The notes beneath the pieces were generated by a model, which was not told the origin of the DNA, made no database searches, and saw only the letters and a program-made list of their open reading frames with translations. Both the position numbers and the translations under genes were made by a program. DNA of 64,000 nt from Zancudomyces culisetae HAW-14-8 (lineage: Eukaryota; Fungi; Kickxellomycota): contig JBNJNM010000021.1 in the NCBI GenBank assembly GCA_052426225.1, forward strand, positions 1,984,001 through 2,048,000. Reading direction: 5' to 3'. Shown here piece after piece: positions 19,924 to 64,000 of this stretch; positions within the stretch are counted from its first letter, which is position 1; every line of letters starts with the position of its first letter.

Positions 19924-19930
19924 TATAAAA
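19924..19930 (+). promoter_or_regulatory. Putative TATA box of the P450 gene
   Basis: TATAAAA about 75 bp upstream of the ATG at 20006. Confidence 0.4.
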
Positions 19931-20005
19931 TAGATATATCAACCCTGTTGGTATTTATTGCACAATCAGCAATGATTGTTGGAAAAATAAAACACGCAAG
20001 CTAAA

Positions 20006-21682: not shown

Positions 21683-22282
21683 TGTACATGGGGGTCACTT
21701 GATAGTTATAATTTGTAAAGTTATTCATAATATAGCGTTTAATGATTTTTGACTGGTTTTTTGTTTGTGTATTATAAAAACTCCTCCTTTGCTAGATAAA
21801 AAAGAAAATCGTAGATGAAATTGTACTTTACTGGAGTTTGACTAGACTTTGATAAAACGAACAAAAGTGAGGGTGAAAATTTGGGGGGAAGTGCGTATAG
21901 AAATACCACCAGGGTTCTGATTATGTGGTTGAGTATATCTAAATTATTTTTGTTTATTGTAACTTTAATGAAATGGCGATATTGATAACAAACAAAATCC
22001 CTGTACCAGTTATCAAGATTTTAAGGTTTATACATTCGAGTCCAGTATTACTATAATAATTTAGAAGAGGTAAAAAGAATCAATTTTCAATCATGAAATA
22101 ATGATTAATAGGTGCAAGGAGGGGAGGAGGGCGAACGAGAAGATTATAATGAAAATTGATTGAATTTATTACAAATTGTTAAACGATACAATAGAGAAAA
22201 TATAATGATAGTATAGAGAAAAACATGATATAATAAATTGATAAAACAACACAAGTAGGAGGGGGAGAAGGAGAGAGGGCTA

Positions 22283-23689
22283 CTATTTTCCAGATTTGGA
22301 GGATCGTCCAGACCGGCCATATGATTTGACAAGAGTAGATCGATATTTTGAATAAGCATCATCATTAGACTGTGAAGAAGTCGAAATGGAAGGTCTGTGG
22401 CGTTCGTTACGATTGTTTGAATTGGAAGTTCTGGATGATGATGAAGTAGATACAGAAGCAGATACAGAAGCAGAAGCGGAAGCAGAAGCACCTGAAGAGG
22501 GCAAAATCGGATCAACAATGCCCTGGAATGTGGAGCCGAGTGACTGGCCTTTGGACCAACCAAACTTTTCAAGCAATTTGTAGCCTACGTTAGATGATGC
22601 AATGTGAGTATTCACATTTGCACCAGTAGCTGATGTGGAAGCAGAAGCAGAAGTGGAGGAAGGGTTTTCTAGTAAAGAATAATTAAAAGGAATGGCAGCA
22701 GATTTTTTGGGCTTGGATGAAGATTGTGATGATTTTGACTTTGACTTTGACTTTGACTTTGATTTTGATCTATATTTTTGACTAGAATGTGATCTATGTG
22801 GAGATACAGAGCGAGAGGAAGAATAATAGGAGGAGGGAGGTGAAGAGGAGGAGGGGGAGGAGGAGTAAGATGGAATAATTTGATATAAAGTTTCAAGGTC
22901 CCAACCCTCTTTGTCGTATATGAGTTTTATATCTGATTTTGGATCATCAGAGTCTTCTGGCTTTCGAAAAATAAGGTTAACGTCAGAGTAAAACTGGTCA
23001 AGAGCAGCAGTAAGTTCAACAGAGAGTGGTTGAGATTCAATCGATTTGATAGTCGATACATCTTCAATGACTTTGGGATCAATAGGAGTATAGCGAGAGT
23101 TGGATGAATTTATGGATGGAATCATTAGAGCGGCAGGTAAATCGTGGTATTTTTTAGTAGGAATAGGAGGAGGGGGCTGTAGTGAAGGTGGTGGTGGTGG
23201 TGGTTGAAGAAGTGGAGGATCTATAGGTTGAGAAGGAAGATAATGATGAAGAATGTGAGGAGGAAGAGGAGGAGGGGGGAACTGTAAGTGTGGGGGTGGT
23301 GGTGGTGGTGGGTGAAGGGGTAGAGATGAAGGAGGCGGAGGAGGGAAAGGAAATGGAGGAGGGGGAGGAGGAATTGTCTGATGGTGGAGAAACGGTTGTT
23401 GTTGTTGTTGTAGGTTTGGGTTTATAACGGTTGATTTAAACCTAGCTGGAGGTAAATCTATCAGATTTGGAGTCAATAGATTGGTACTTAACCGAGCCAC
23501 AGTCTCTGGAGCAAAGTTGTCTAGTAATAAGCCAACATCGATATTAAATGACTGGAGGGCAAGTAGTAGTGGCAACATACTTTCTGCAATTCGTGAATTG
23601 GGGTTTGGAGAAAACAGATGGATTCTATAAAGTTATGTCATGTTTAGTTGATGTTATTTCGTAAAATAAAGTGTTGAAGAGTCAAAATA

Positions 23690-23720
<31 letters not shown>

Positions 23721-24697
23721 AATAAAAGTAGTTTATTAGATGGGTTACATGTGACAGGTTACAGAAACCACAAACTCTGAAATTAAGGTGGTATTTGTTA
23801 CAGAAGTGTTGGTGCTGTTAGCACTAGATTCGGTGTTCTTCCATGATAATACACAGGCAATGAAATACAATAAACAAACATACTCGTCTTCTTGAAATAG
23901 AGTGGATTGGATTAAAGAGAGGATATTCTAGAGTTACAAATACATTATTTTGTTTAGTGAGAAGTATTAGTATATGCTAAGAATTATCTTGATATTAAAA
24001 ATTCAACGCAAGCAAATGTGAGAGAAAATAAAACAAGAGAAGAGAAAAAAATATAAAATGAGGTTACCTGTACTATTTCGGAATCACTAGCAGTATCAAG
24101 CTTTGGATTCAAGTTAATCACAAAAGTTAGAATTGAATTAATATTTAATTGTTGTTGTTGTTGTTGTTGGTTCGGTGGATAAATGGTGTGGTAAGAAGAA
24201 TAGAAATTGACTAGTTTGTCGAGACAATGCTTTGGGTTAATATTGATAAAATCGGAATAATAGTACAGTTGAGAATTAAAGTTTTGAAGTTTGAATAGGT
24301 AGAGTTTATGATATTTGTTGTTTGGATAGAGAAACCGGAATTTGGGGTTGTCCTTTTGATGATGCATAACCTTTTTGGTGAAATCATTTATTTTTTTTGT
24401 TAGTTAAAAAAGTAAAATAAAAGAATAGAAATGAATAGAAAGCTGTTAGTGTTAGTGTTTGTGTTGAAGTGAATGTGTAACAAGATTAAAGTAAAAAAAG
24501 AGAAATAAACAAAAACAAAAACAAAAACAACATTGATGAAGAGAGGAACAAAAAGGAAAAGGAAAAGGAAAAAGTAGAAATTTTACCATTGAAATCAAGT
24601 CGGGATTAGTATGGTGTTGAAGAACCATTTTATCGATAACAACCAAATCTTCGGTCTCTGGGTAGTCTTCATTTTTCAAGTCTGATATACTCAACAT
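22283..24697 (-). CDS. CHERP-like splicing factor (SURP, CID-like, Pro-rich, RS, G-patch); exons 24697-24587, 24370-24068, 23927-23749, 23624-22283
   Basis: SURP (VIDKMV..NPKFRFL), YHDLPAALMIP..YTPIDP motif typical of CHERP, G-patch SNVGYKLLEKFGWSKGQSLG; GT-AG exons sum to 645 codons. Confidence 0.82.
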
Positions 24698-24789
24698 TTT
24701 ATTTGATTAAAGTAAAGAGGAGAAAAGTAATTTAAAAAAAGAACAATAATAAATAAATAAAAAGGAAAGGAAAAGGAAAAAGGGAGAAA

Positions 24790-26595
24790 TTAAGCGGTAG
24801 AAGAAGGCAGTAGATAATTGGATTCAAGGTTTTTGACAAGATCACCGATTTTGGCGGAATTGCGAATAAACCAATCAGCATACTTTCGACCAACTTTGTT
24901 TTCAGCAATATAAACAACATCATTATCAATGGCAAAGCCCAAATCACCAATGCTGGAGGGAAGGCCATCAAGCAAGTTGGGGCCACCAGACCATTTTAGC
25001 TGGGAGGCACGTTGCTTGAAGACAAGGAGTTGGGTGTGGAGTTCGGCAGGAGAAATGTCAAGGAAAGAGGCCAGCTTGTCGAGCTTCATAGAGGTGTAGA
25101 GACGAAGGAATGAGCGAAGGGTGGGGACAATGAGTTGGAGACTGACTTCGTGCATAAAGATTTTCATTTGGAATTCCTGAAGTTCAAAGCGATTGAAAGT
25201 TTGATTGGCATTGGAATTTGGATTTGAAGTATCAGGATTTGAAGTAGAAGTAGAGGTAGAGGTAGAGGTGGTTGGATTTGGATTAGCAGTAGAAGAAGAG
25301 AGAGAAGAAAGATAAGCGTCATAGTTTGGAGGATTTGGAGAAATGAATTTGGGGCAGGCATAGAGGAACAGTTCCTGGAAAGTGGCTAGAGAGTCATCGC
25401 CACCACGCTGCATGCGAGACTGTTGCTCGCCATACTTTTCACGGAGATGAGAGTGGATTTGTTCGTCAACACGAGTAGGCGAGAGAGCTAAACAGATAGC
25501 CATAAGCGCATACATCTGGTCAGCCTTCTTGTTGACAATGTCGAATTGGAACGAGCGGGTCTGGTACTGGCGAGTACGCAGAATAAAGGTAAGAATGTTG
25601 GCAAAGATGCGGGTGGCGTCGGAGTAGCGGCGCATCATCAAGTACGAGAAGCCGACGTAGTAATAGAGAGTCACGTGACAGGCTGGAACGCGAGTAAACA
25701 GCGCACGGTGGTTTCCAAGCTCAATGTTCTCCAGGCTCTGCAGCGCAAGGGTGTAGTCGCCCATCATGCAGTGGACACGCAACAGCCCAACCAGACTGAA
25801 GTATCCCAGCATTTTGTACAGCGAGCAGTTTCCGTACTCGCCTGCTGCCACTGTTGGGTCTTGTCCATTGACGCTTGCTTGCAATTGCTCGCAGATTTTC
25901 GACTTGGCTACCAAGCTGTACAGCACATTCAACACGCTGTGTGTGTTCCATACTGCCGTGTTGTTCTTCAACACCTCGATAGTATCTGCTGCCTTCTTGC
26001 TCAGGTTGCTTCGGTACGTGCAGAAGCTCTGGAACTGGTAAATAAACTCATCAATAATGTCCCACAGCCATTTGTTTGGCAGCTCCAGCTCTACCGGCTT
26101 CTCCGAGTTCAAAATGTGGTTGAACAAGTCGCAGTAGTTGTCAAACGACATGATTCGCTCCTCCAGGCTTGGCTGCAGATGTGAGTATATATGTCTAAAG
26201 TACATTTCCTTGTACAATATCAAAAATATCTCGTTTCCCTTAACTAGCTCCCCAATGTATTTTGCCTCTGGCCACGATGTTTTGCTATAGAATTTTTCGC
26301 TCATCTTGTTGAATTGGTACTCGTATATATGCGTAATCTTCCCTATATTGCTCTGGTCAATTGTTCGGCTAAAGTACTGTATAAAATCTCGAACTTGCGC
26401 TGGAATCTGCTCTACTCCCTCCTGCAACTGTTCCTGTGCCTTTTCATATCGCTGCTGTTTTTGTTGTTTCTTCATTTCCTCGAGCTCCTTTGCTACCTCT
26501 CCATCAACATATTCATCCATCGCTGCGTATGAATCTGCCACTACATCTACGTTGATGTATCCCGTAAGTTCGTCTTCAAAATTGTCCTGATACAT
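24790..26595 (-). CDS. EIF3L: Eukaryotic translation initiation factor 3 subunit L
   Basis: FLILYKEMYFRHIY, LELPNKWLWDIIDEFIYQFQSF, YKMLGYFSLVGLLRVH, ACPKFISP. Confidence 0.96.
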   Translation of the reverse strand: MYQDNFEDELTGYINVDVVADSYAAMDEYVDGEVAKELEEMKKQQKQQRYEKAQEQLQEGVEQIPAQVRDFIQYFSRTIDQSNIGKITHIYEYQFNKMSEKFYSKTSWPEAKYIGELVKGNEIFLILYKEMYFRHIYSHLQPSLEERIMSFDNYCDLFNHILNSEKPVELELPNKWLWDIIDEFIYQFQSFCTYRSNLSKKAADTIEVLKNNTAVWNTHSVLNVLYSLVAKSKICEQLQASVNGQDPTVAAGEYGNCSLYKMLGYFSLVGLLRVHCMMGDYTLALQSLENIELGNHRALFTRVPACHVTLYYYVGFSYLMMRRYSDATRIFANILTFILRTRQYQTRSFQFDIVNKKADQMYALMAICLALSPTRVDEQIHSHLREKYGEQQSRMQRGGDDSLATFQELFLYACPKFISPNPPNYDAYLSSLSSSTANPNPTTSTSTSTSTSNPDTSNPNSNANQTFNRFELQEFQMKIFMHEVSLQLIVPTLRSFLRLYTSMKLDKLASFLDISPAELHTQLLVFKQRASQLKWSGGPNLLDGLPSSIGDLGFAIDNDVVYIAENKVGRKYADWFIRNSAKIGDLVKNLESNYLLPSSTA

Positions 26596-27143
26596 CTTGT
26601 TCTCGTTTTTCTAATCCAATTGTTCAATGGTTCTTGCGTTTTTCTATTCAATCTTGAATTTACAATTTGATTACAATATTTTTGATTTGTGGTCCTTTTT
26701 CTTTTTACTCTACAACCTTTATTTACTAGTTTGGTTGATTAATTTTAGCAGGGTAACAAAGAAAAAAAATTTTTTTTATTGTGCCTTTAAAAAAAAAAAT
26801 TAAAAACAAACCCCTTGGTTACTTTGGTTGAGTTTGGTTGAATTTGAATTTTTTTTATTTTTATTTTTATTTTTATAATTTATTTTTATAACTTAATTAT
26901 TTCATAATATAAATCCAAATAAACAATATATACAAGAGGATCACGTTCTTTCATCTTTTAGTTTATACATTATAGAAACTTTTATAATCTTTGACTATAT
27001 TAAAACACCACAAGTCTAACTACAAATCCAAGTTACAGCTTATTTATTTTCATAATAAAAACAAAATGTCAAAAAAAAAACAAAGACAAACGTCAAAGTA
27101 GATATTTCAAAACTAAACCAAAATTTCCAGTTTTGAAACTGTA

Positions 27144-28812
27144 TTATTTTTCCTGTATCTCCATATCCTTCATTAGCTGTTGCAATTGCCTTTGTTTATC
27201 TTGTTGTTCTGCCTTTTCCTATTTCAAACACACGTACACACAATTATAAATATAAAGTAAACTCATATCACCATTTAGGAATCCAAAAATGTTTCAAAGT
27301 TTCTTACCCTTTCTTCGATTTTCTTTAATAGACTTGGTAGATAATCACTAAGTATAAATACAAATATAAATACATTATTAAATGATACATGCCGCTTTTA
27401 GTATCTCTCACAAATACATAATAACCCAATCTATCATTGTGAAATGATACAAAAAGTATATAGAAAAAAATAGAAAGTAAAGAGGAGAGATAAATACCTG
27501 AAAAATTCGTTTCTTGCCACATCAACCTTTTCAAAAAACTCATCAATACCCATCCCTGTATGCGAAGATACTCCAACAACATTCAAATTGTTGTAAAATT
27601 CTTCAAGGACTAGACACATGGAATTCATCAACGAATTCAGATACGATTCCTCTTGCATTTGCAATGCCTCCTGGAACTTTTCAAAGTCGCGCAGCCATTC
27701 GACATATGTATGATGCGAAACTATGTCCGTCTTGTTGAACACCAATATAAATGGAAGCTGACTCTTATACAATATGCTACATTTATACATTACATTTATT
27801 ATTTGTACATTTATTACCACTTTTTTGTAATTTTGTTACAGTTTGTGCTTAAAAGTGTTATTATCGACCAGTTTTTACCTGCAAGCATACAACATGTTTG
27901 ACATGAACGTCATTGGGTTTTCCGTTCTTGTCGTATCAACTATATACACTACTACCGTGGGATAGCTCGATGCCAATGTATCCGTTATAATAGACCCTGA
28001 AGCCGACCATGTAAATATTTCTATCTGTCCTGGTGTATCAATAACCACATTTCTATGTTCAAAGTAACATGCACAAGGGTTAAATTCCAATTTCTCAGAA
28101 AAATATATAAAAATAAAAGCAAACGAAAATAGAAGGTGGTGGTGTTAATGATAATAAATATATCATGTGTAGGTATAATACTTGCTTTAGTTCGGATGCC
28201 TTTTTATCAACAATATCCAAAACTTGATCAAATTTGGTTGTAAACAGATTCAATGAAGTCATAATTGCTCCATTTGGTCCCAAATCAAATCTATAAAATT
28301 TATCATTTAGCTTTGTTTTATTTTTGTTGCAATATTGAAGTAGGGGAAAAGAGGGGGGCGTGTGAGGTAGGGTGTTACTTGATGAAAGATTCGGGTAGGT
28401 TTTCAAGAACAAGAAATTTAAGAAATTATACTTACTCATTCATAACATTCTTATAATTGACTGTTTTTCTAATATCGATATTTGCTGGGTATGGCACCTT
28501 GGTAACTGCGGGATCAAGATTGATCAAGTATGGTGGGGTTTTCTGTTGGCTCAGATATGAGTTTATTCTCTATTGAAGTATTTAGCAAGTTCTTCAAGTT
28601 ACCTTTAATATCATACTTGTATATTTCAATTGTAGATATTATTTATACATTTGGTTTAGTACACATTCTTCATTTATCAATGCAAAAAGTATATATAACG
28701 AAAAAATAAAGCAAATTACTTGAACAAAGGTCGTCTTTCCGGAACCAGCCATTCCAATGACAAGCAACACTGTCGGCTTCTTCTTGATGTTTGCTTCGAA
28801 TTCCTCTGACAT
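27144..28812 (-). CDS. GPN1: GPN-loop GTPase 1 (RNA polymerase II biogenesis), multi-exon
   Basis: ATG at 28812 gives [17 protein letters not shown]; [54 protein letters not shown]; TAA at 27146-27144. Confidence 0.93.
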
Positions 28813-29288
28813 TATTGTGTTTATTTATACGGGTTATTATATTGTAATATTTGGAAACAAGTCGAGTTGAGTACAAAAAAAAATAATTAGTGGAGCTATT
28901 AAAATGTTCCTAGAATTTAAAATTAATATTGCAATTTTGATGAGTTTTGGGAGGAAGGCATTTTAAGGAAATAATGATAAATTTGCAGGAGTATTCGCCC
29001 TGGACAAACTTGGTAAATACAATTCAGCTGATTTCTTGCTAAAACGCAAAAAATATAGTTACGATTTTTGTTGGTAATACTTCCTATAACACTAAAAAAA
29101 AAAAAAAAAAATTTTTTTTGTCTCAACATTAACAAAATTACATGGTTAATAAATATGATTTATACTTGGATCAAATAAAAAATATTAAACATCACAAATA
29201 CAATAGCAAAATAATATATATATAGTAAATAGCTATTTAATTAGAATAACAGTAGACTTAGCTAAAAACCTTGTTTGAGAAAACCAAA

Positions 29289-31129: not shown

Positions 31130-31761
31130 GTTTCTCTTCTCTCCTTTTATTTTTACACTCTACATTTTACATGTTACATTTTACATGTGTAAATATTTTG
31201 TTTTTCATTTTTATCCTTTTATATAATTCTATATTAACTAGAAGTGTTTATTTTCTATTTGTAAATCAAACACGGCACGTATCAAAAAAAAATATGAAAA
31301 GAAAAGGAAAAAAGGGTATATTTCTTATTAGGTAATATATATCATTTACATAAATTCCTTCTTTATGTTTATTGGTTGATAATCACACGTAGATTTTGTT
31401 TTTGGTAAATCACAAGACATTAAAAAGATAAACAGTAAAAGAAAAAAAGAAAAAGAAAAAGAAAAAGAAAACGAAAAAAAAATTTTTTTTCTCATGTTTT
31501 TCTTGATTGTAATTGACTTGAGGGGGTTGGGGGGGGTTTTAATAGGCATTTATGGGAGAGAATGAAAATGTAGTAGTAATAGTGATTTAATGCAAAAGAC
31601 TTGTACAAAATAGAAATAATTATAATAATACATATAATTATAATATAAATACTAAAAATAAAAAGTAAAACTTTTTTATACTTGTGATTATATATTTAGG
31701 TGATTTTGCAAACAAGAAAAATAGTAGAATCGATAAATAATCTAAAAGAAAAGAATAAAAG

Positions 31762-33784: not shown

Positions 33785-34006
33785 TTTTAATTCTTTTTCC
33801 CTTTTTTTTTTCTTGTTTATTATATTATATTAATTATATTATATATATATCAAATCTATATAATTTAAATCTATATATATTGAAATCTATATATATCTAT
33901 ATAAATATATATAATATTATTATTATGAATATGAATATTTATTATTATCATTATCATTATAATCATTAATATTAATATTAATACTATCCTAATCAGTTCC
34001 AGTTAT

Positions 34007-55200: not shown

Positions 55201-57057
55201 TGAACGGATTTCGGTGCGCAGTTCATTCCACCACATCTCGCGAGACTGGTACGAGTCATACTCAATGAGTTTGACAGAGTGTGCGAGTACTGCACCACCG
55301 ATTTTGGAAATTTCATACGATAGTGTGGAATGTGTTGTGGTGGTGTGTGGGTGGTGGTGTAGTTTTAGTGGAAATTTGGTGAGTGTTAGAATATCTACAG
55401 TTCCATAGTCCAACCGATAGTCACGCTGTTGTGGATAGTTTTTACTTGTTTCGCTAGCTGTTTCCAAGTTTGTGGCGTCTAGTTCATTTGCAACATTCTT
55501 TGCCAAGTATTCGTCGCCAGTTCCGCGATTACAAACATCTTCTGGATTAGATTGGTCGTAAGTATTCGCGCTAGTGTTTGCATTTATATTTATATTTGTA
55601 TTTGTATTGATATCATTTGTATTATTTGTATTTGTGTGTAATAAAGAATCAGTATTGTCACTTCCGGGGTGGGTAGTAGGTAGCGATGCAACAGGCAACC
55701 TAAAATTCTTGATAGCAGTACCAATGGCACGAGCAGTGATCGATTTAGTGGCCGTTTCAAAGTCAAAGAAGTGGCGGTAGCCAAAGATAACATTTGCACC
55801 ACGTTCGGCTGCCAATTTGCCCATTTTACGCCGCAGTTTACCGGCAAGCTGGAAGAGTAAACGTTGACGACTCAAATTGGATCCGCGAGCTGTACGGAAA
55901 TTGTCGCGCCAGTGGTATTCAGGATCTGCGGCCGTAAGAAGTATTGAAACCAAGGAACCGCATGAAGGAATGTCTGAAAATGAATTGGTGGTGGAAATTG
56001 TAGTGTCAGCAGTAGAAATTTGTGTAGGATTTGGATTAGTGTTAGTGTTAGGGTTGGAATTAGGTTCGGGATTAGATATTGAAATAGAAGTAGAAGTAGG
56101 AGTGAGGGTAGGCATAGGAGTGGGAGTGGGAATGGAAGCAGAAACAGGAGCAGAAATAAAACCAGAAAGTGTGGAAAAGTTTGACATTGATGTTGGTGTG
56201 ACAGTAGATGAAAATATTTGAATTTTATTACTGGCTTCGGCTACAGGATTGATGTTTTCAAAAAAAATCAACTTGATTGAAAGATAGATTTCACCGCGCA
56301 GTCCAGCTATTACGTCGTAAATCGGAAACCATCCTGCCATTAGCTTGGTGGCGCTGGTGCCAACCGGGCTGGACGGTTGGGCTGCTCTAGATGCAGATGT
56401 AGGTGCTGATGCAGCAGCATTGGTTGCAGCAGTGGTAGTAGCAGTGGTAGTAGCCATTTGTGTATTATCAGGATCTTGAGAATCGGCATTTGTATTTTCA
56501 AATGTTGTAAGATTGAATTGAGTAGTGGTAGTGGTTGTAGTAGTGGTAGTATTATCAATGGCAGCAAGAATGCTAGTATCAGTATCAGTACCAGTACCAG
56601 TACCAGTGTTATTATTATTATTATTAGTAGTAGTAGTAGCGTTTGTGGTAATGTTAGTACTTTGTTGACAAGAACTCGATGGAATGTCATGGGATTGTGT
56701 TTGCCTTTGATTTCGCTTTTGGTTTCGTGAACGAGTGCCAAGATCATATTGGGGAGGAACAGCGAGCATAGCGTTGAGATCGACAAAGGTAGAGCCAATA
56801 ATGTCGTCGGCAGTGATCGAGTCGTGGTCCACAACCCGGAATTCAAGGGGCTCATTGTGGAGCGAGGCATCGTTGCCGATTTCGAGTCGGAACGATTGGT
56901 TCCACACGGGATTGAGTGACCGCCACACAGTGTCTGTACGCAAAACATCGCAGTCGGCAAACCGGACCTCAACATACGCATCTGCGGACAAGGTTTTGCG
57001 ATCCATTTTGGGGAGATTGCGGGCGCGGAGTACTTTGATTTTCAGTGTGGTAGGCAT
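52279..57057 (-). CDS. C2CD5/CDP138-like protein (N-terminal C2 domain plus YbjQ-like domains) with long low-complexity insertions
   Basis: C2: LKIKVLRARNLPKMDR..DAYVEVRF..SLNPVWN..VDHDSITADDIIG; GWFPIYD..GLRGEI; DPEYHWRDNFRTARGSN..RQ; REMWWNELRTEIRSHA; LPFIEYDLHCQLLHKL. Confidence 0.88.
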   Translation of the reverse strand: MPTTLKIKVLRARNLPKMDRKTLSADAYVEVRFADCDVLRTDTVWRSLNPVWNQSFRLEIGNDASLHNEPLEFRVVDHDSITADDIIGSTFVDLNAMLAVPPQYDLGTRSRNQKRNQRQTQSHDIPSSSCQQSTNITTNATTTTNNNNNNTGTGTGTDTDTSILAAIDNTTTTTTTTTTQFNLTTFENTNADSQDPDNTQMATTTATTTAATNAAASAPTSASRAAQPSSPVGTSATKLMAGWFPIYDVIAGLRGEIYLSIKLIFFENINPVAEASNKIQIFSSTVTPTSMSNFSTLSGFISAPVSASIPTPTPMPTLTPTSTSISISNPEPNSNPNTNTNPNPTQISTADTTISTTNSFSDIPSCGSLVSILLTAADPEYHWRDNFRTARGSNLSRQRLLFQLAGKLRRKMGKLAAERGANVIFGYRHFFDFETATKSITARAIGTAIKNFRLPVASLPTTHPGSDNTDSLLHTNTNNTNDINTNTNININANTSANTYDQSNPEDVCNRGTGDEYLAKNVANELDATNLETASETSKNYPQQRDYRLDYGTVDILTLTKFPLKLHHHPHTTTTHSTLSYEISKIGGAVLAHSVKLIEYDSYQSREMWWNELRTEIRSHATTMGCTHVVGYSESMAICDNVAVLTVYGTAVILSPPPIQSLLSASGHALSDVGDRAGYLGSSNPGFGMNSICRAFHSVSDCSDLGGLDNSSNQRKKSVKANVVTTNNLPLDASIHDDPTIENPNTNPNTTNDANTSTGNDDNNNNNNFNNVGKDNDINNKNRNTSPSAINNCNTCDSDTTVPQILLTTMEIPDELLQALERTPESHPKLSKQHPQQQTMLINAQVYKTLGTENSNYNINESINSTSLGNNAINFADATLATDKEDINSNVNFNVNANANANVNSSANANINDEGSGNVKYKPTTSKPTPINQTSSTFNQFSKLLNLTRLTSLASTGMKKKKRKSKRAPHTTYYRSRNNSSSSSSSFSYSSSSSSDTDNDSDDLDPETIASFLSDSLPFIEYDLHCQLLHKLRLYQMNAVFGLKYNITVLKNSPDHQQSQNQNQNQNQNQHKYPQPTSSTTSSFYGANTPLASDTQPGTTQKKSYFKSQPIKPGLKPNSDLKPLNKSKTFSSTTPNDPLLNLKAKEIPTNTTNINNTTNINTTNNNTTTNTTNIINTIATATTTGTGTGIGTGIGKSKQKSKNKNKSKPQESITILACVTGTAIFIPSLPTPKLLNIDNLQNFSQQQQQQQQQQQQQQMTSQNNLDNSFVSNLSHNLSILKPLVDTCTTPSNAPLNLSGGMDGTIQLEDLSDLQQLLSLFDMLPFFNNQFSLSNTLLPSTYSPSTSSSNNQLEIQNITLLKQIPTSIFSSSPSFSCSSSSSSSPSSLSSSFSSDLNFLDLSIKEIFANIVFSSQSIPQSICGISYSILPNLRLDNSFTTSSSYDSVQLLLSATTVSFSNSHPNYKFKSSLNPSQKPKKPNSKSKILSKQNSINKDKIYLTSLNCLPGHQISQFIGRLSLHFIKESDYLSLPDFVHSFVNESHSAILRSHVMALNGNALVAMSIDSCSILPTTTSSAYAVFSVSGDVVHTSPL

Positions 57058-57523
57058 GTTGTTTCTCTATATCTTTTTTTTTTTTATCGTTTCCTTTTGC
57101 TTTTTATTTTTTCCCACTTGATTGTTATTAGTTGTTGTTGTTGTTGTTGTTATAGTGGAATAATAATATACTTAATTATTTAATGGTGGAGGGAGAAGAG
57201 TAGAGAGTGTTTGATTTGAATACTTAATAGCTCATTTCGCCATATATTAAATTTATACAAAAAAATTGCAAAATTGTAATATTAGCAAAAAGAAAAAAAA
57301 TATATGAATAAATATTAATATACGATTTAATATTTATTTTCAGACTTTAAAAGAGAGCCAAAAAAATAATAAAAATAAAGTAAAAAACTATTTACAGAGT
57401 TTGACAAACAAATCAAAATTCAGAAATAGAACAAAATAAGCGATAATTGAAATTATATAAAAAAAAAAGGTAAAAATAAAAATAAAATAAAAAATTATAA
57501 AACATAATGAATTGGGAAAGAGT

Positions 57524-60500
57524 TTAGTGCGATTTAGGTTTTTTGGAGAAAGAGGAAGAAAGATCCAGGTCAGGAGAATAATCAGGATTGGAACGTTTCT
57601 TGGCCTTTGATTTCTTGAGCAACAGTTTGTGTTGTTTATGTTTGGCAAAGGCAGTAGGATTTTCCAATTTGAAAGCAGCGATTTTTGATTTTCTGGAAGA
57701 AGACTTGAGTTTGATTTGGAGAGAAGTTGAGTGAATAATGGAGTTGTATACAGGAGGCGTAAGGGTAGATTTGAAGGAATCGAGAAGTTCTACCAAGAAT
57801 TTGTAGCTGGCATCAAGATCAGCATCAGCACTATTGACATCGCCATCAGTATTAGCATTAGCACTGGTATTGGTATTGGTATTGGTATTGTTGTTGTTAT
57901 TAGATGAAGAGTATTTTTTCTTGGAAATAAGACCGAGATGTTGAGGAGTCTTTTGGGAAATGTGATGATCGAGGGAAAGGAACGATTTGTAAATAGGAGT
58001 GATTAGAGTATTGTTGAGGTCAGGAGTGGCAGGGTTGACAAAAGGAGAAAGAAGTTGGAACGAGTAGTACCTGAAGGAAATAGAAACAGGAGTTTTATAA
58101 AGTTCAGATAAAGAGAGCTTGATGAGTTTGTTGATATAAGAAAGGAAAGAAGGAGAATCAGTAGAATGATAGAGGGAGAGAAGAGAGGAGAGGAGGGTGT
58201 AGAGAGGAGTAATAATGTTGATGTTGTCATTGCTTTCGGCAAACGGAGAGGAAAGAGAAGCGTAGTGTTTGAGGGCATTGATTGATTTGATGGAAATGAA
58301 ATTGAGAGTATTGAGATTGTAGTAATAAAGAGGGGAGGAAGATATTGGTTGGTAGATAGCAAAATGTTTTGGATTTTGTGAAGAAAGAGTGGAAAGGTAA
58401 GAAAGGAATTGTTGGCTGGTAAATAGAGAATTGAATAAAGAAGTTGAGGTTGAGTTTGAGGTTGAGGTTGAGGTTGAGAGAGGTTTTAAAGGTGAGGAAT
58501 TAATTGGAGAGCGAGAATTGTATTGAAGTAAAAGAATGTTTGCAACAATAGTCTTGATGTGGATGTTGGGGAAATCCAAATGTAGAACTATGAGTTGGTC
58601 AAGTCGAGAAGAGTTTGTATTAGGAGATAGAGAAATGATACTGTGGATGATTTTGAGAGCAGTTAGAGAGTATACTGACCAAAATTCGAGAGAGATAAAA
58701 GGATGCAAGAGAGGATTAGCAGTAGCAGTAGCAGTAGCAGTAGCAGTAGTATTGTTGGTATTGGTGGTATTATCGAGATCAAAATCAAAATCAATATTGT
58801 TGTTGTTATCGTTATTGGCGTTACTGTTATTAAGAGTGTGTTCGTAGAGGATAAAAATCGAGACAGAAAGAATGTCAGTTAGGAGGTTGAGAATATATTC
58901 AAGATATTCTTGGTTATTAGGAATGTTGTTGACAAAGATAGAAAATAGGTTTGGAGAAAGCAAAACGTTGAACGATTTCAGAGCGACCAGGAGGAATTTA
59001 AGGTCGTTTTGGATGTTGTGGTTTGAGGGAGCAGTAAAGTTGGAGGACGACCACAACTTGAGGAGTTCAAAGCAGTGAGCAAAGGCCGAGTTTTGATCTT
59101 GTTTTTTAAGCAGCACATTGTTGTAGAAATAAGAAAGAGTGTTTGTAGGAATTGCGGCAGAATCAGTTAGTGACACATTTAGAGATACAAACAGGACAGA
59201 GCAGATATCGTTATTGGCAAGAATTGATGAAGGTAACAGTTTGATTAGTTGGTCAAGTAATGACAGAGACGACAGTCGGCCTGCTGAGAGCGAATAATCA
59301 ATGAGGTTTTGGCATAGGAAGGATAAGTGGTGGGCAATAAAGTCGGCGTGGGAAAGTAAATTGGAATGATAGAAAAACAGAGTCAAGTAAGAAATGTAGA
59401 TAGATTGACATTTGGCACGGAATGAGGCATTGTGGTTGGCTATACAATTGGGTTTGACAAAATCATTGATGATAAGGTTTGCTTTGGCTAATAAAGGTTT
59501 GTATTTAGACTGTTGTTGTTTTTGTTGTTGTTGTTGTTGTTGTGATGATGAAGCAATAATTGCAAGAATGGCATTAAACAAATTAAGATTGATAGATAAA
59601 AACTCGACATTTACATTAGTCGTACTAATCGTCGAATTATTCATTATTATAAAGTCTAGCAGGAAATCCAGTGATGCTACATTAAGCATTGACGATGTCA
59701 ACAATATGTTTGTAAGCAGTCTGAGAATCGAAAAATTCGTTTGATTGGTTGCTGAATTCTTGAATGTCTTGAGTAACTGAATACATCGCTTCACTATCAC
59801 TGTGATATACTTGTTTGTTGTATCTTGTTTAATACACTTGTTGAAAAAGCTCGTCGATAGCAGTTTGAGTGATTGGTTGATAACATTGTCGAATTTGCTA
59901 AACAGACAGTTGCCCACTATCTCTAGTCGCTGGATTCCTTTTTCGGTGGTTACATTGTCCATAAAATCATGAGACATCAATATGTTCAATCCAAACTCGG
60001 CTAATAGATGTAGCTGGTCGTTGTTGTAGTTTTTAAAGATTAGTGAATATACGAATCCACCAACTGTAGAATTTATATCTACTACATTATCTACTACATT
60101 ATCATTATTATTATTATTATTATCGGTATTCATATCGACATCAACATCAACATTAGTAATAGTGTTGGTGTTGGCCAACTTGGAGGTGATTCCAACTGTC
60201 AAATGAGTCAAGACCTTTTCAATAGTAATAGTAGTATTTCTTCTTGAAGACAACAAAAACTCGTGCAAGACAGGCAACAAGTTGTTGAACACAAGGCGTA
60301 AATCACAATGTAATGGCAAGTACTCAAATGTAGATAGGAGTTTAGGATAGTGGAAAACGTTTGTGGTGAGGATTGGAGTCAAATGGTCAAAACAATAGTC
60401 CAAATCGCCAGTGTTGGGTTTCAGGTAGAACAGGAGTTTGCTGACTAGATATATAAACTCGTGTTTTTGTTGGCTTCTCTTGGCCGAATCCAGATTTGTT

Positions 60501-63500
60501 TGCAGGTTGGAAATTAAAAACCATAGATATTTCGGACCCAAAAATGCTGAGATTTTGTATAATGGCTGTCTCAGCTGTTTGATTACTGATTTTTCGCGAA
60601 TGTACGTCTTGAATAGTGATGAATACTGCATCAAGAATTTGCCTAATTCCAAATCGCTATCTTTTCCATTAACAGAAAATGTTACCGAGGTTTGGATAAC
60701 TACATAGTAGTAACAGAATGGAATTTTGTTTGGTTCGGTTACTTGAATTCCATTTTTGCTAAATATCAGTTGGTTAATTTTCCGCAAAATCACATGGTGT
60801 GAATTTACAATTGCCCTTTCTTTCTCCTTACTAGTCTCGTTTTGAATTTCCCGGTTAGAATTGGGTGTATAATTATCCAAAACCTTGTATACCAAGCGCA
60901 AAAAGGTACCGTTATTGACATTGTTGGGCAGTGCCAGTTGGAATAAGAGAGAAGTAACAAGACGAAGATAGGCAGAGAATGTCAAAGTAGTTGAAATGAG
61001 ATCAAGATTCTTGATTAGTTCGTTGGTTAAATCGACATTGTTGCTAGTAAACAACAGAGCCTGATGCAAAGGAATGAAAACAGTCTGCAGTACTGAATCG
61101 ACATTGTTGTTTGGAGAAAGAAGAGAATTGAATTTGGACAAGGCTCTGATTTTTCGGTAATGTTGGATATGAATGATATTCTCGAAATAATACTCGACGT
61201 CGGTATCTGAGCTTCCAAAGTATTCATAAATTCTTTTGATTTGTTCAATCTGTCGATATTGTTCATTCAAAACTAAACTCTTTACAATTTTGACAAATTC
61301 GTTTCTAACAACACTGCTTTTGTTACTTATTCCACTGCTAAATACAATCTTGCTCAAAAAGTACTTGGCAACAAATTCCACGTCCAATCGATTCGTTTCT
61401 ATAAACTTTGTAACTATCAAATGTCCAGCATTCGTTTTAAACATTGAATTGTCTCCCAAATCCACTTTTATGTCCAGTTTGCCTCCTCCTCCTCCTGCTC
61501 CTCCTCCAATCATATTACTCTCGTCATCAACCCTTTCATACGCCAACATATACACCAACGTATAAAACACTGGAACCAACGTCTCTGTAATACCATCGGC
61601 AACACTCATGACGTCTTCAAAGCCTGCTGCACGTTGTTCATAATCCAACATTACCCGCTTACCCTTTATGATCACCGCATTAAGTTTGGTTAGCAAATCA
61701 ATAGTGACTTTGTGGTCTGGATTCAGTAACGCATATATTTTAACCAGCGTCATACGGTCCTGCTTGTTCTGAAGCAAACTAAACATATCCTCAGCCAGTT
61801 TGTTTGCTTGATCGCGTAAATACAGATCAGCTGCCACAAATCCTGCGACATTGACATAGTAGTTGTAGATACAAAACACCAACTCAATGGCTTCTGAACT
61901 CATTTTTTCGGCATGAGTTACTCGGATCACCAGCTCCAAACCCGTGTTTATCGCGTCCAAATCTATCACTGCCAAATTCGTCTCAATACTATATCTAACT
62001 ACCATCGTCATCAGCCGAATCAATCGCTGCGCCATCGCATTTGTACTTAGGTTTTTAGCCTGAATTGCCGTAATATATATGTTGATGTTTGCCAAAAGTG
62101 CATTGATGTTGTTGCTATCGAGATTATGCAGCATTAGCTCTGTAATGTTCACAACTATTTGTACTACTGCTGCATTGACCTTGACTCCACCAATCAGTGC
62201 AATCAGCTTGTTTACTACTGTTGTGTCTCCAATAAGCCAATATCTACTTTGCTTGTTGTTATCATCATCATCATTGTTAGTATTATTGCTTTCCAGGATT
62301 GGAATATCAATGTTTTCTATAATACTCTTTATCAATTCCAATAAACTAGATTCGTTTTGAGTATTTTCCAATTCAAATCTTGACATTTTTGGCATAATCA
62401 CTTTTTGTACAACACAATCTTTATATTGATCAGTTAATCTATTCTGCAATATCAATTCTGTAAATATCCGGTGTATCATTTTACTATTTTCTTTTTCTTT
62501 CTCCTTTCCGTACATTTGCACATCTCTTTCAATAATTTCAACCATAAACTCCATAATCATCTCTATCGTACTATCGTCCATTTTATTCCCTAGTTTTTCC
62601 ACCATTATATAAATATTCTTCAATTTACTCTCATCCTGTTTCTTGTTTCCTTCAACCATCAACTCTATCATCTTGCCTACATACACTCCCGCAAACTCTT
62701 CCATTCTCAAGATAAATCCTACTATTGCACTACGCTTGATCTTGGTATCGCTTTTGTTGGTCCGATTACCTTCTCGAGATACCAATCGACCAAACAATAT
62801 TCGACAAACAATCTCAACCACTATTTTTCCTCCATACTCTTTCTCGTCCTCCTCACTGTCTACTGCAATTTCTTTTGGCTGGTACTTTTGTAGCTCTTCT
62901 TTCATTGTCTTGATATCCAAAATTCGCTTCATCGATTCAGTTTGTGAACTTCCCAAATCATAATATTCCGTCAAGTACTCAAAACTTTTTTCTTGAACTT
63001 CTTTATCTCCATTACTCAACTTGTCCATTGCCAGTCTTCTTATCTCGACTTTCTTTATCTTTGCCAATCTAAACATTTCTATATACATGGCTATCCGCCG
63101 ATTGTTTCGCTCAACTGGCAAAAACTCTTGCTCGATTTCGCCCATATGTCCCTTGACCATTGGAATATTCTCTCTTAGCAAATCTATTACACTATCGATA
63201 ATCACATTTTCTTGCTTATCTCTTTCTTCTTTTTGTGTCTCTCCCATACTTTCTCTCCAGTTACTAGCATTCTTGTATACTTGTTGGAATTTATTTTCAT
63301 ATCCATCATTATACTCGTGGCCCTCCAAGTATTTTTTAATTTTTTTAACTTTTAGTTGTATATTCTCCACTTGTTGTTCTTGTTCCTCTTTTTCTCCTTT
63401 TTCTTTTACTTCTTTTTGTTCAACAACAACTTGATCCATATCTACATTCATATTTACATCTTCATCCTCATCTTCATTCATATCCATATCTATATCTATA

Positions 63501-64000
63501 TCCATATCCAAACCTAATTGGATTTCTTGTTCTTTTTGTAGTGTACTCTCCTTAATTCCATCATAATATCCTTTCAATATATTATACATCTGCTTATACA
63601 CACTCTCTCGTACCTGAGCAAATCCACTCTGATCTGTTGCTAAAAGTATCTTTACGATTCCCGAAACTTCTTTACGAATATACATCAAATCACTATTAAT
63701 CATTACACAAATCGCACTTGCCACCACTTGTTTAACCATTTCATTGACCTTTTCTCCTCCATTTGCTTCCTTGTTCCGGGAATCTTTTGTTCCAACAACC
63801 AAACTTTTTGCTCTAACTGCCATTCTCGTCATCAAGTTTGTCTTTTCTTTTGATGTTTCCACCTTGTCTCGCATCTCCAACATTTCTTCTGTCTCTTCAA
63901 TCAACTTTTTCGCCTCTCCAAACTGCTCAAACTGTCCCTGTACCAATCCTCCATTTTGGTACTCTCCTTCCATCATTTCCTTAATTATCCAAACCAACAC
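57524..64000 (-). CDS. UTP20: U3 snoRNP-associated HEAT-repeat protein Utp20, 5'-truncated by the window edge
   Basis: Very long helical ORF; FENIIHIQHYRKIRAL, RILFGRL, C-terminal ENPTAFAKHKQHK. Confidence 0.85.
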   Translation of the reverse strand: MLVWIIKEMMEGEYQNGGLVQGQFEQFGEAKKLIEETEEMLEMRDKVETSKEKTNLMTRMAVRAKSLVVGTKDSRNKEANGGEKVNEMVKQVVASAICVMINSDLMYIRKEVSGIVKILLATDQSGFAQVRESVYKQMYNILKGYYDGIKESTLQKEQEIQLGLDMDIDIDMDMNEDEDEDVNMNVDMDQVVVEQKEVKEKGEKEEQEQQVENIQLKVKKIKKYLEGHEYNDGYENKFQQVYKNASNWRESMGETQKEERDKQENVIIDSVIDLLRENIPMVKGHMGEIEQEFLPVERNNRRIAMYIEMFRLAKIKKVEIRRLAMDKLSNGDKEVQEKSFEYLTEYYDLGSSQTESMKRILDIKTMKEELQKYQPKEIAVDSEEDEKEYGGKIVVEIVCRILFGRLVSREGNRTNKSDTKIKRSAIVGFILRMEEFAGVYVGKMIELMVEGNKKQDESKLKNIYIMVEKLGNKMDDSTIEMIMEFMVEIIERDVQMYGKEKEKENSKMIHRIFTELILQNRLTDQYKDCVVQKVIMPKMSRFELENTQNESSLLELIKSIIENIDIPILESNNTNNDDDDNNKQSRYWLIGDTTVVNKLIALIGGVKVNAAVVQIVVNITELMLHNLDSNNINALLANINIYITAIQAKNLSTNAMAQRLIRLMTMVVRYSIETNLAVIDLDAINTGLELVIRVTHAEKMSSEAIELVFCIYNYYVNVAGFVAADLYLRDQANKLAEDMFSLLQNKQDRMTLVKIYALLNPDHKVTIDLLTKLNAVIIKGKRVMLDYEQRAAGFEDVMSVADGITETLVPVFYTLVYMLAYERVDDESNMIGGGAGGGGGKLDIKVDLGDNSMFKTNAGHLIVTKFIETNRLDVEFVAKYFLSKIVFSSGISNKSSVVRNEFVKIVKSLVLNEQYRQIEQIKRIYEYFGSSDTDVEYYFENIIHIQHYRKIRALSKFNSLLSPNNNVDSVLQTVFIPLHQALLFTSNNVDLTNELIKNLDLISTTLTFSAYLRLVTSLLFQLALPNNVNNGTFLRLVYKVLDNYTPNSNREIQNETSKEKERAIVNSHHVILRKINQLIFSKNGIQVTEPNKIPFCYYYVVIQTSVTFSVNGKDSDLELGKFLMQYSSLFKTYIREKSVIKQLRQPLYKISAFLGPKYLWFLISNLQTNLDSAKRSQQKHEFIYLVSKLLFYLKPNTGDLDYCFDHLTPILTTNVFHYPKLLSTFEYLPLHCDLRLVFNNLLPVLHEFLLSSRRNTTITIEKVLTHLTVGITSKLANTNTITNVDVDVDMNTDNNNNNNDNVVDNVVDINSTVGGFVYSLIFKNYNNDQLHLLAEFGLNILMSHDFMDNVTTEKGIQRLEIVGNCLFSKFDNVINQSLKLLSTSFFNKCIKQDTTNKYITVIVKRCIQLLKTFKNSATNQTNFSILRLLTNILLTSSMLNVASLDFLLDFIIMNNSTISTTNVNVEFLSINLNLFNAILAIIASSSQQQQQQQKQQQSKYKPLLAKANLIINDFVKPNCIANHNASFRAKCQSIYISYLTLFFYHSNLLSHADFIAHHLSFLCQNLIDYSLSAGRLSSLSLLDQLIKLLPSSILANNDICSVLFVSLNVSLTDSAAIPTNTLSYFYNNVLLKKQDQNSAFAHCFELLKLWSSSNFTAPSNHNIQNDLKFLLVALKSFNVLLSPNLFSIFVNNIPNNQEYLEYILNLLTDILSVSIFILYEHTLNNSNANNDNNNNIDFDFDLDNTTNTNNTTATATATATANPLLHPFISLEFWSVYSLTALKIIHSIISLSPNTNSSRLDQLIVLHLDFPNIHIKTIVANILLLQYNSRSPINSSPLKPLSTSTSTSNSTSTSLFNSLFTSQQFLSYLSTLSSQNPKHFAIYQPISSSPLYYYNLNTLNFISIKSINALKHYASLSSPFAESNDNINIITPLYTLLSSLLSLYHSTDSPSFLSYINKLIKLSLSELYKTPVSISFRYYSFQLLSPFVNPATPDLNNTLITPIYKSFLSLDHHISQKTPQHLGLISKKKYSSSNNNNNTNTNTNTSANANTDGDVNSADADLDASYKFLVELLDSFKSTLTPPVYNSIIHSTSLQIKLKSSSRKSKIAAFKLENPTAFAKHKQHKLLLKKSKAKKRSNPDYSPDLDLSSSFSKKPKSH

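Follow-up and report, generated by a model that had tools for sequence, protein, structure and literature searches.

Compositional strand asymmetry in nuclear genomes is usually faint, and it has to be averaged over hundreds of loci to show. In a 64-kb stretch of DNA from Zancudomyces culisetae, a mosquito-gut fungus of the Harpellales, a first-pass annotation described kilobase-scale domains in which one strand is rich in purines and the other in pyrimidines. We asked whether these domains of the analyzed stretch (the window) are real, and what kind of process makes them.

The domains were confirmed, and they extend past the window. The standard deviation of 1-kb GC skew between 21.8 and 64 kb was 0.32, against 0.05 expected by chance, and the domains lie 11-25 standard deviations away from G=C. 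AT skew has the same sign as GC skew in the domains. Thus, the asymmetry is a purine skew, in which G goes with A. As the annotation had stated, the + strand was G/A-rich at 21.9-25.3 kb (GC skew +0.43, z=+15), 29.3-32.9 kb (+0.31, z=+11) and 49.3-59.5 kb (+0.40, z=+25), and C/T-rich at 33.1-39.5 kb (-0.38, z=-18) and 61.4-64 kb (-0.41, z=-13). For the additional C/T-rich domain placed at 26-27 kb, the sign was right and the strength was weak (-0.15, z=-2.8). Four 60-base counts quoted for the KH and UTP20 genes were exact on recount, and the accessory regions at 1-21.8 kb, described as little skewed, had a GC skew of +0.03. Over 264 kb including the window, a 3-state HMM found 26 blocks of at least 900 bp; when the sequence was permuted within 20-kb chunks, 4-5 were found. 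Because the independent Illumina assembly of strain COL-18-3 aligns at 97.3% over 21.8 kb, an assembly artefact is excluded. No paper mentioning this pattern in Z. culisetae was found in the published literature, and we know of no nuclear genome in which a skew of comparable strength has been described.

Table 1. Skew domains and related features of the window
Feature	Position	Purine-rich strand	Basis
Unskewed accessory/TE-rich reference stretch	1..21689		GC skew +0.03 over 21.8 kb
Ty3/gypsy pol ORF, inside the flat accessory stretch	563-1957		Pfam
Purine-rich + strand lobe	21690..25393	+	HMM blocks, GC skew +0.45, +0.53
eIF3L switch point	25680..25776		Fourfold step model and cumulative GC skew
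Purine-rich - strand lobe	25777..28100	-	500-bp GC skew -0.14 to -0.28
Minus-to-plus transition, intergenic, joining two adjacent units	28101..29445		Cumulative skew minimum at 28096
Purine-rich + strand lobe	29446..32553	+	HMM blocks, GC skew +0.60, +0.50; AT ~+0.36
Purine-rich - strand lobe	32554..40818	-	HMM blocks, GC skew -0.33 to -0.72
Flat stretch separating two units	40820..49249		HMM flat, GC skew +0.03
Long purine-rich + strand lobe	49250..59571	+	HMM, GC skew +0.48, +0.47
Patchy transition zone in UTP20 ORF	58900..61300		Fourfold track
Purine-rich - strand lobe, UTP20 5' part	61212..64000	-	HMM, GC skew -0.41, AT -0.21

The accessory stretch was flat in the HMM except for two short blocks of 0.6-0.75 kb, and it also holds ankyrin ORFs and a P450 gene (Pfam). 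In the first + lobe, the G-patch gene, a small ORF and the 3' half of eIF3L all lie on the - strand; therefore, their coding strand is pyrimidine-rich. The fourfold GC skew of the 1.5-kb bins from 22.0 and 23.5 kb was +0.64 and +0.79. The adjacent - lobe, with the 5' half of eIF3L and a GPN-type GTPase ORF (-), is weakly skewed over all sites and strongly skewed at fourfold sites. The + lobe beginning at 29446 contains the 5' kilobase of AATF (+) and the 5' part of the KH-domain ORF (+). The 3' part of this ORF falls in the following - lobe together with the next ORF (+), NAA35 (-) and two more + ORFs (fourfold GC skew -0.74 and -0.43 in the bins from 34.0 and 35.5 kb). A CDC50 gene and an ankyrin-repeat gene (Pfam) occupy the flat stretch from 40820. 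The long + lobe is composed of two sub-blocks (49250-53856 and 55964-59571) and spans + genes at 49.8-52.2 kb, a C2CD5-like gene (-) and the 3' part of UTP20 (-). Its fourfold GC skew was +0.70, +0.55 and +0.60 in the bins from 52.0, 56.5 and 58.0 kb, with a dip to +0.22 in the 53.5-kb bin that separates the sub-blocks. The intergenic gaps within this lobe have a GC skew of +0.47, and the region at 50.5-52.0 kb, annotated as a putative multi-exon HOP2 with short introns, has +0.52 to +0.67. The last - lobe continues beyond the window end. The identities of UTP20, eIF3L, AATF, NAA35, the G-patch gene and the KH gene were confirmed by Pfam.

The skew was then compared between site classes. In skewed blocks, 72-78% of fourfold sites are purines on the purine-rich strand, whichever strand codes. 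The lobe composition on this strand is A.44-.47, G.25-.32, C.07 and T.17-.21; it is mirror-imaged between genes on opposite strands, and approximately symmetric in flat regions. The shift in the lobes amounts to A +.12, G +.12, C -.10 and T -.14 with GC unchanged (fourfold GC 0.32-0.39 in lobes versus 0.33-0.34 in flat DNA). Codon positions 1 and 2 are less skewed than fourfold sites. The annotation had allowed that the skew might vanish at fourfold-degenerate sites; it was looked for there and persists. Intergenic gaps inside the blocks are also skewed, with GC skew of +-0.41 to 0.67 in seven of eight and -0.15 in the remaining one, and their skew equals that of the adjoining coding DNA. Thus, synonymous and noncoding sites follow the skew as had been claimed, with a purine share of.8-.9 at fourfold sites versus.55-.67 in nearby noncoding DNA. 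Low-complexity or amino-acid-composition skew was rejected, since fourfold sites are the most skewed and the conserved domains of eIF3L and MetRS switch. Gene orientation and amino-acid content are not the source of the skew.

These results show that a regional, strand-asymmetric substitution bias acting on the DNA itself makes the domains. Because one strand gains A and G and loses C and T while GC content stays constant, the bias is of the pyrimidine-to-purine transversion type. It reaches silent and intergenic sites and, via those, amino-acid-changing sites. Amino-acid usage changes several-fold between the two block orientations (Glu 11.2 vs 1.6%, Pro 1.4 vs 8.6%, Ser 6.6 vs 16.0%).

The sign of the skew changes inside single genes, and the cleanest case is eIF3L (24790-26595, - strand), which switches within its conserved Paf67/PCI domain. 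At the switch, the purine share of coding-strand fourfold sites drops from 0.88 to 0.17, and codons 0-270 have purines at 79 of 96 fourfold sites on the coding (-) strand. The step model placed the switch at codon 277 (2-lnL support interval, codons 273-305; 2*dlnL = 127), and the cumulative GC skew has its maximum at 25759. In both eIF3L and MetRS, the share falls from ~0.8-0.88 to 0.17-0.25 within 30-40 codons (~100-250 bp). Thus, the skew is visible in one gene, as a change of silent purines from ~0.85 to ~0.2 over this distance. The conserved domains of both genes are repeat-free, yet fully skewed at silent sites. The flip claimed for UTP20, a single ORF at 57524-64000 (- strand) with its 5' end outside the window, also held. 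Its fourfold track is purine-rich at codons 0-900, patchy at 900-1600 and pyrimidine-rich from 1700; a single-step fit places the change at codon 1638, and the peak of cumulative GC skew is at 61177. The switch at 32553/32554 in the KH ORF is the sharpest in the window (D = +0.83). As an example it is partly confounded by the composition of the encoded tracts, since at the flip a Glu/Lys/Arg-rich tract gives way to poly-Gln encoded by CAA. Read 5'->3', all strong fourfold steps in genes pass from purine to pyrimidine, and the per-gene skew slope was < -0.3 in 17 genes and > +0.3 in 3. No fourfold step was found in the eIF3L and MetRS orthologues of Smittium and Furculomyces or in the eIF3L orthologue of Coemansia. 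This comparison of orthologues supports the view that the skew is specific to the Z. culisetae lineage.

Over the 264 kb, the skew is organized as discrete units, each composed of a + lobe followed by a - lobe, which is a new observation. In each lobe, the purine-rich strand points 5'->3' at a narrow switch point. Sharp plus-to-minus steps numbered 7, versus 1 minus-to-plus step (D = -0.56), which is the intergenic transition at 28101..29445. The six plus-to-minus gaps were all 0.4-1.7 kb, and the minus-to-plus gaps were 1.1-29.8 kb. Unskewed DNA, in flat stretches of 8-30 kb, is confined to minus-to-plus transitions. All eight plus-to-minus switches lie within ORFs; direct minus-to-plus transitions are intergenic. 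Switch points are spaced 7-35 kb apart in gene-rich DNA, and lobes measure 1-6 kb, some 8-12 kb. The fourfold profile consists of plateaus (purine share 0.8-0.93) and steps as narrow as ~100-250 bp. The sign was kept across 9 of 10 strongly skewed gene junctions, tandem or convergent. Block edges showed no enrichment at ORF starts or stops and were no closer to them than random positions.

The skewed units contain constitutive genes (EDC3, VPS18, AP-mu subunit, BBP, CAND1, MetRS, eIF3L and UTP20), and the flat stretches contain MFS transporters, GALT, desaturase and TEs. These gene lists support a concentration of the skew in constitutive housekeeping genes and its absence from TE-rich and accessory DNA. 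The fourfold and intergenic sites agree with the position-fixed, regional strand bias in housekeeping genes that the annotation had proposed. Its statement that the skew ignores transcription holds for the sign, yet 7516 block codons have a purine-rich coding strand versus 3882 with the opposite (2:1). The coding strand is purine-rich in ~55-66% of block codons and pyrimidine-rich in the others, with equal amplitude. In our reading of the gene map and the HMM, the genes at the outer edges of units mostly face inward.

As for the cause, our best guess, at a little less than even confidence, is a process that follows the direction of DNA synthesis, replication being the probable one. The two-lobed geometry would arise if two processes tracked along the DNA, either away from fixed sites or towards them. 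The likeliest tracker would be the replication fork, with leading and lagging synthesis having unequal error or repair spectra. If C>A and T>G were both favoured on one strand, that strand would become richer in A and G and poorer in C and T at constant GC. Housekeeping clusters would be replicated in a fixed direction and flat regions in either direction, and the switch points would be fixed origins, with the GC polarity of yeast origins, or fixed fork-meeting points. In the C>A/G>T and T>G/A>C classes, Pol epsilon and Pol delta make errors with opposite strand biases (PMC5538550). In POLE/POLD1 tumours and yeast mutator alleles, the two classes are biased to the same strand (PMC5538550, PMC10830898), and this combination is the one needed for the rise of A and G at constant GC in Z. 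culisetae. C (and also A) is over-represented on the leading strand of S. cerevisiae and K. lactis, which gives a downward GC-skew step at origins (PMC3459929). The GC skew at the plus-to-minus switches of Z. culisetae also steps downward; thus, the sharp switches have the GC polarity of these origins. As in the replication skews of yeast origins, human N-domains and bacterial replichores, the skew is found at neutral sites, does not depend on transcription direction, and changes sign at fixed points.

Several observations stand against replication. The plateau-plus-step profile with long flat stretches fits poorly, since replication skews show an origin jump followed by a fork-merging ramp or N-shape. 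The placement of every plus-to-minus switch in an ORF also fits poorly, being unusual for fungal origins, and ordinary termination would not give steps as sharp as 100-250 bp. The sign of the AT component is opposite to that of the yeast replication skew, in which the leading strand is A-rich: G goes with A here, whereas G goes with T in bacteria and human, and C with A in yeast. To our knowledge, the amplitude is ~10-50x, or one to two orders of magnitude, above any known nuclear replication skew. The stronger skew of fourfold sites than of nearby noncoding DNA counts against replication, as do the differences between strains HAW-14-8 and COL-18-3, since in-block substitutions were mainly transitions (two strains, unpolarised, without a close outgroup). 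The intact repair genes count against it as well. The genome has six MutS_V loci, MLH1, one MutL_C-domain gene, OGG1 and UDG. It also encodes an exact FDIETTK, the Exo I motif of Pol epsilon, 3.9 kb upstream of the DUF1744 domain of that polymerase. The annotation had suggested a check for loss of mismatch-repair or proofreading genes; no loss of mismatch-repair genes or of this motif was found in a genome search. Therefore, a mutator genome arising through such loss was rejected, and Z. culisetae differs in this respect from the somatic and laboratory POLE/POLD1 mutators. In broader terms, we consider it possible, with confidence clearly short of even, that Z. culisetae carries a very strong directional mutational process with ~100-250 bp switches, in the form either of domains of replication or repair synthesis in a fixed direction, or of a self-propagating strand bias of a kind not yet described.

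A transcription-linked origin is fairly unlikely. The non-transcribed strand of constitutive genes would become purine-rich, for example through abasic-site bypass when exposed, and pyrimidine-rich coding segments would reflect read-through or antisense dominance from inward-facing neighbours, so that lobes would be transcription-like units colliding at the switch point. The constitutive gene content of the units, the 2:1 codon excess, the inward-facing edge genes, and the genic plus-to-minus and intergenic direct minus-to-plus transitions are all in its favour. However, pyrimidines make up 75-87% of the coding-strand fourfold sites in the C2CD5-like gene (4.8 kb) and the G-patch gene over their whole length, and in the 3' halves of eIF3L, MetRS and UTP20. 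Antisense transcripts of up to ~9 kb would have to outweigh sense transcription, and neither the block edges, unenriched at ORF ends, nor the constancy of sign across junctions is in agreement with it. Selection on proteins, codons or mRNA (charged versus Ser/Pro/Thr-rich tracts, codon regimes, or a need for purine-rich mRNA) is extremely improbable. The large differences in Glu, Pro and Ser usage and the flips at low-complexity tracts, as in the KH ORF, would suit it, but the skew at codon positions 1 and 2 is weaker than at fourfold sites, intergenic gaps carry the skew equally, the skew tracks the DNA strand rather than the coding strand across convergent genes, and conserved orthologues of related genera lack it.

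The geometry bears on two further explanations. Self-reinforcing purine tracts, whose runs would grow at the 3' end via slippage or context-dependent misinsertion, would meet as stable sharp walls at plus-to-minus switches and leave widening neutral gaps behind them at minus-to-plus transitions. The plateaus, the narrow steps in the sharpest genes, the restriction of flat DNA to minus-to-plus transitions and the excess skew of fourfold sites in skewed coding context are as this explanation predicts. Inter-strain indels, which cluster in blocks and are simple repeats of the local skew ((AAAAGG)n, GAGGAG, CTCCTCCTCTTC), also favour it. We nevertheless regard it as unlikely: we know of no polymerase or repair mechanism that extends purine runs at the 3' end, the repeat-free domains of eIF3L and MetRS are fully skewed, and the flatness of TE-rich DNA and conditionally expressed genes is left unexplained. 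Recombination at fixed double-strand-break hotspots is distinctly unlikely. Two-sided resection and error-prone fill-in, with the single-stranded strand running towards the break as template, would give an opposite bias on each side. The bipolar units, with a narrow centre, 1-6 kb lobes and cold flat DNA between them, fit this geometry, and the GC polarity agrees with C loss from 3' tails; in yeast, strand-coordinated mutation clusters switch strand at a break. However, damage to single-stranded DNA predicts T over A on that strand, and A exceeds T here. The fourfold GC is not consistently raised in lobes, giving no clear signal of GC-biased conversion; some lobes reach 8-12 kb, and fungal hotspots are usually sited at promoters whereas the centres here are in ORFs.

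The pattern was also compared with two other known asymmetries. McLean and Tirosh (2011) described an intragenic GC-skew gradient in unicellular fungi, in which C prevails at the 5' end of the coding strand and G at its 3' end, and proposed a mutational cause (PMC3315797). In both systems the sign changes within genes, and fourfold sites, amino-acid usage and flanking noncoding DNA are affected. In contrast to that gradient, the 5' end in Z. culisetae is the G/purine-rich one and the 3' end is C/pyrimidine-rich, AT skew flips with GC skew instead of being uniform, and the plateaus and steps are not anchored to gene ends and span several genes of either orientation. The amplitude, seen in the eIF3L fourfold shares, is far above theirs. 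A mild gradient of the McLean-Tirosh type was present at the MetRS fourfold sites of Z. culisetae relatives. Human CpG-island promoters have bidirectional, promoter-centred strand asymmetries (PMC2817419), which are similar in being bipolar around fixed sites near housekeeping genes. These asymmetries are reportedly weak. Z. culisetae differs in having tight intragenic switches, with flat DNA on the promoter side.

If such a very strong directional process is at work, the direction of a DNA-tracking machine would be readable from eukaryotic sequence alone, and the same mutational asymmetry would reshape single proteins, favouring Glu, Gly and Lys on purine-rich coding strands and Ser, Pro and Thr on pyrimidine-rich ones. 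If fork direction is the cause, the replication programme could be read from the sequence, and the units would be a natural experiment on how mutation bias alters protein composition. If the cause is another, an undescribed directional mutational process would be indicated. Codon-usage, selection and phylogenetic analyses of Harpellales are distorted by such a skew, and spurious antisense ORFs may occur in skewed DNA.

The statistics cover 264 kb of one contig of the 27.1-Mb, 25-contig genome of Z. culisetae, a gut symbiont of mosquito larvae belonging to Harpellales. This sample consists of the window (C21:1,984,001-2,048,000) and 200 kb upstream of it, and eight loci from relatives were analyzed in addition. 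As coding frames, we used the 55 ORFs of 300 codons or more in the 264 kb, which are ORFs and not curated gene models. Where it aligned (76% of its length), the eIF3L ORF of the window was 100% identical to the Z. culisetae eIF3L protein; its identity to eIF3L of Smittium and Furculomyces was 60-67%.

The SD of 1-kb GC skew was 0.32 at 21.8-64 kb, whereas sampling alone predicts 0.05. The four 60-base counts quoted in the first-pass annotation were all exact on recounting. The purine and pyrimidine domains that it had described lie 11-25 SD from G = C with AT skew of the same sign, except for that of 26-27 kb, which is only weak. The accessory part indeed shows little skew (GC skew +0.03 over 1-21.8 kb). 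A second strain, COL-18-3, was assembled independently from Illumina data, and its sequence aligns over 21.8 kb with 97.3% identity; the skew is therefore no artefact of assembly.

The skew did not disappear at fourfold-degenerate sites or in intergenic gaps. On the purine-rich strand of the lobes (HMM-called stretches in which one strand is purine-rich), the fourfold sites contained A.44-.47, C.07, G.25-.32 and T.17-.21, corresponding to a GC skew of +0.55 to +0.62 and an AT skew of about +0.4. The composition was mirror-image between purine-coded and pyrimidine-coded genes, and close to parity in flat regions. Fourfold sites exceeded codon positions 1 and 2 in skew (slope 1.26). Furthermore, in seven of eight intergenic gaps between skewed ORFs, GC skew was ±0.41 to 0.67 and matched the adjacent coding DNA. 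The fourfold shift was A +.12, G +.12, C -.10 and T -.14, and GC content was unaltered. The bias is of the transversion type, from pyrimidine to purine on one strand. The trinucleotide asymmetry mostly followed how much G:C and A:T each triplet contains; no particular context was conspicuous.

Across the 264 kb, the skew is organized in discrete units rather than in a continuous sawtooth. Each unit is composed of a + lobe followed by a - lobe; therefore, the purine-rich strand always runs 5' to 3' toward the switch point. With 2-kb half-windows, seven sharp +to- steps and one sharp -to+ step were detected, and the latter is the junction between two adjacent units. The six +to- gaps between merged lobes were all 0.4-1.7 kb, whereas the -to+ gaps were 1.1, 8.4, 15.4, 17.3 and 29.8 kb. 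Thus, flat DNA is present only on the outer side of the units. The fourfold purine share in the lobes formed plateaus of 0.8-0.93 that closed in steps without ramps. Within-gene slopes were negative in 17 cases and positive in three. This excess arises because switch-spanning genes in either orientation become purine-rich in their 5' portion and pyrimidine-rich in their 3' portion, so that the polarity rule of the lobes explains it without a link to transcription. Several block edges coincided suggestively with gene starts or stops, yet they were not enriched there over random positions.

Steps within conserved genes were located with a step model. In eIF3L, purines occupied 79 of 96 fourfold sites over codons 0-270 and 22 of 157 over codons 300-602, with the switch at codon 277 (support interval 273-305). 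In MetRS, the step lies at codon 425 (support interval 424-461), and the purine share drops there from 0.78 to 0.24. The fourfold share fell from 0.81 to 0.13 at codon 376 of a 582-codon gene and from 0.75 to 0.19 in a 1177-codon gene, and comparable steps were found in VPS18, a protein kinase and UTP20. The model detected no step in GALT and an MFS transporter.

The fourfold sites of eIF3L are uniformly pyrimidine-rich in S. culicis and Furculomyces, and near even in Coemansia. The MetRS orthologues of Furculomyces, S. culicis and S. mucronatum have only a slight gradient, in the opposite direction to that of Z. culisetae; in these relatives the fourfold purine share climbs mildly 5' to 3', for instance from.27 to.52 in S. 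culicis. Since these orthologues are without the step, the proteins do not impose the steps, which are specific to Z. culisetae. Fourfold sites in the housekeeping genes of the relatives are generally pyrimidine-rich. Strongly skewed blocks occupy 33% of gene-rich Z. culisetae DNA and 0-10% of the eight loci from relatives, save one S. simulii locus (24%). In the S. culicis locus L027, extreme low-complexity tracts lie at 4001-5000 and 14501-15500; one spans 1 kb and has a GC content of 1-4%, and the other has a GC skew ranging from +0.63 to +0.95.

The proteins of Z. culisetae are reshaped by the skew. Between purine-coded and pyrimidine-coded segments, Glu changes from 11.2 to 1.6%, Gly from 7.9 to 2.4%, Ser from 6.6 to 16.0% and Pro from 1.4 to 8.6%. 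Amino-acid content and gene orientation as causes are ruled out by the fourfold sites, the intergenic gaps and the orthologues, and selection on proteins or codons is accordingly given very little weight.

Among described phenomena, the closest is the intragenic GC-skew gradient that McLean and Tirosh reported for unicellular fungi in 2011 (PMC3315797). Like the skew of Z. culisetae, it extends to fourfold sites, to the usage of amino acids and to the DNA flanking the genes. However, that gradient is reversed in sign, has uniform AT skew, is anchored at gene ends and is far weaker; the MetRS gradient of the relatives has its direction, and that of Z. culisetae is the reverse. In yeast, human and bacteria, replication skews are transcription-independent as in Z. 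culisetae, but their base pairing, the shape of their profiles and their amplitude are different. We found no paper tying GC skew or strand asymmetry to Z. culisetae or its phylum, and the paper on the HAW-14-8 PacBio HiFi assembly makes no mention of skew, asymmetry or purines.

The geometry of the units would need two opposed directional processes. Replication is ranked first as a tentative cause, because the skew does not depend on orientation and also appears at neutral sites, because the sharp switches have the GC polarity found at the origins of S. cerevisiae and K. lactis, which have a C-rich leading strand (PMC3459929), and because polymerase errors are known to favour C>A as well as T>G on one and the same strand (PMC5538550). 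Such errors would raise A and G there at constant GC content. Against replication stand the plateau-plus-step profile with long flat stretches, the intragenic switches, an AT component opposite in sign to that of yeast, the enormous amplitude, and the stronger skew of fourfold sites than of adjacent noncoding DNA. The first-pass annotation had also suggested a check for loss of mismatch repair or proofreading genes. Such a loss is not supported: MutS occurs at six loci, MLH1, a MutL_C gene, OGG1 and UDG are present, and the Exo I motif of Pol epsilon, FDIETTK, is exact. The six-frame search (G000:C21:596466-598319 and G000:C8:1603439-1603576) showed the DNA_mis_repair domain in MLH1 only and, elsewhere, just a weak partial MutL_C match; it gave no clear PMS1-type partner, which may be intron-split or diverged.

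Units carry constitutive housekeeping genes, whereas flat stretches carry transporters, GALT, a desaturase and TEs. This content, together with the position of all eight switch points within ORFs and an excess of purine-coded over pyrimidine-coded codons of about 2:1, hints at a link with gene activity. A transcription-linked bias, acting through long antisense or read-through transcripts, is possible but unlikely. Single lobes contain whole genes of both orientations, and the sign was kept over nine of ten strongly skewed gene junctions, tandem and convergent alike. A self-reinforcing purine-tract process, whose tracts would extend 3'-ward until their fronts collide, is distinctly unlikely. 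Between window 14836-36470 and COL-18-3 (GCA_001969505.1), there were 289 substitutions and 86 indels over the 21.8 kb. The indels concentrate in skewed blocks and consist of simple repeats whose skew agrees with that of their surroundings: (AAAAGG)n, GAGGAG, CAA repeats and CTCCTCCTCTTC. The differences in blocks were mostly transitions, and transversions between these two strains, unpolarised, were too few for testing. Asymmetric break repair at fixed hotspots is doubtful and is placed below the purine-tract process. No common motif was seen by eye within ±240 bp of eight switch centres, no tRNA gene lies at centres or edges (the sole one in the 264 kb is located elsewhere), and no TE copies were found within blocks.

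Strongly skewed DNA has no stop codons on either strand, and long spurious antisense ORFs thus face real genes. This is a hazard when the Z. culisetae genome is annotated by ORFs.

Coordinates of individual features in the window and in the fetched loci L023 and L025
Feature	Position	Strand	Remarks
Ty3/gypsy-type retrotransposon, pol part	window 563-1957	+	RT-RNase H, integrase zinc-binding and integrase core domains; unskewed accessory part
eIF3L ORF	window 24790-26595	-	
Spurious antisense ORF	window 29540-30288	-	opposite AATF
Spurious antisense ORF	window 50732-51753	-	opposite HOP2 region
416-codon ORF	L023:8645-9892	-	inverted relative to the L025 copy; near-identical composition profile
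416-codon ORF	L025:675-1922	+	inverted relative to the L023 copy; near-identical composition profile

Upstream of the window by 13-18 kb, a 5-kb island of 13-17% GC (L025:2000-7000; C21 about 1,966,000-1,971,000) is surrounded by TE-rich, unskewed DNA. This island could be a centromere or other structural element. The pair of 416-codon ORFs brackets a region that includes large ORFs (1282, 645 and 323 codons), and probably represents one repeat present in two copies, or else the arms of some mobile element.
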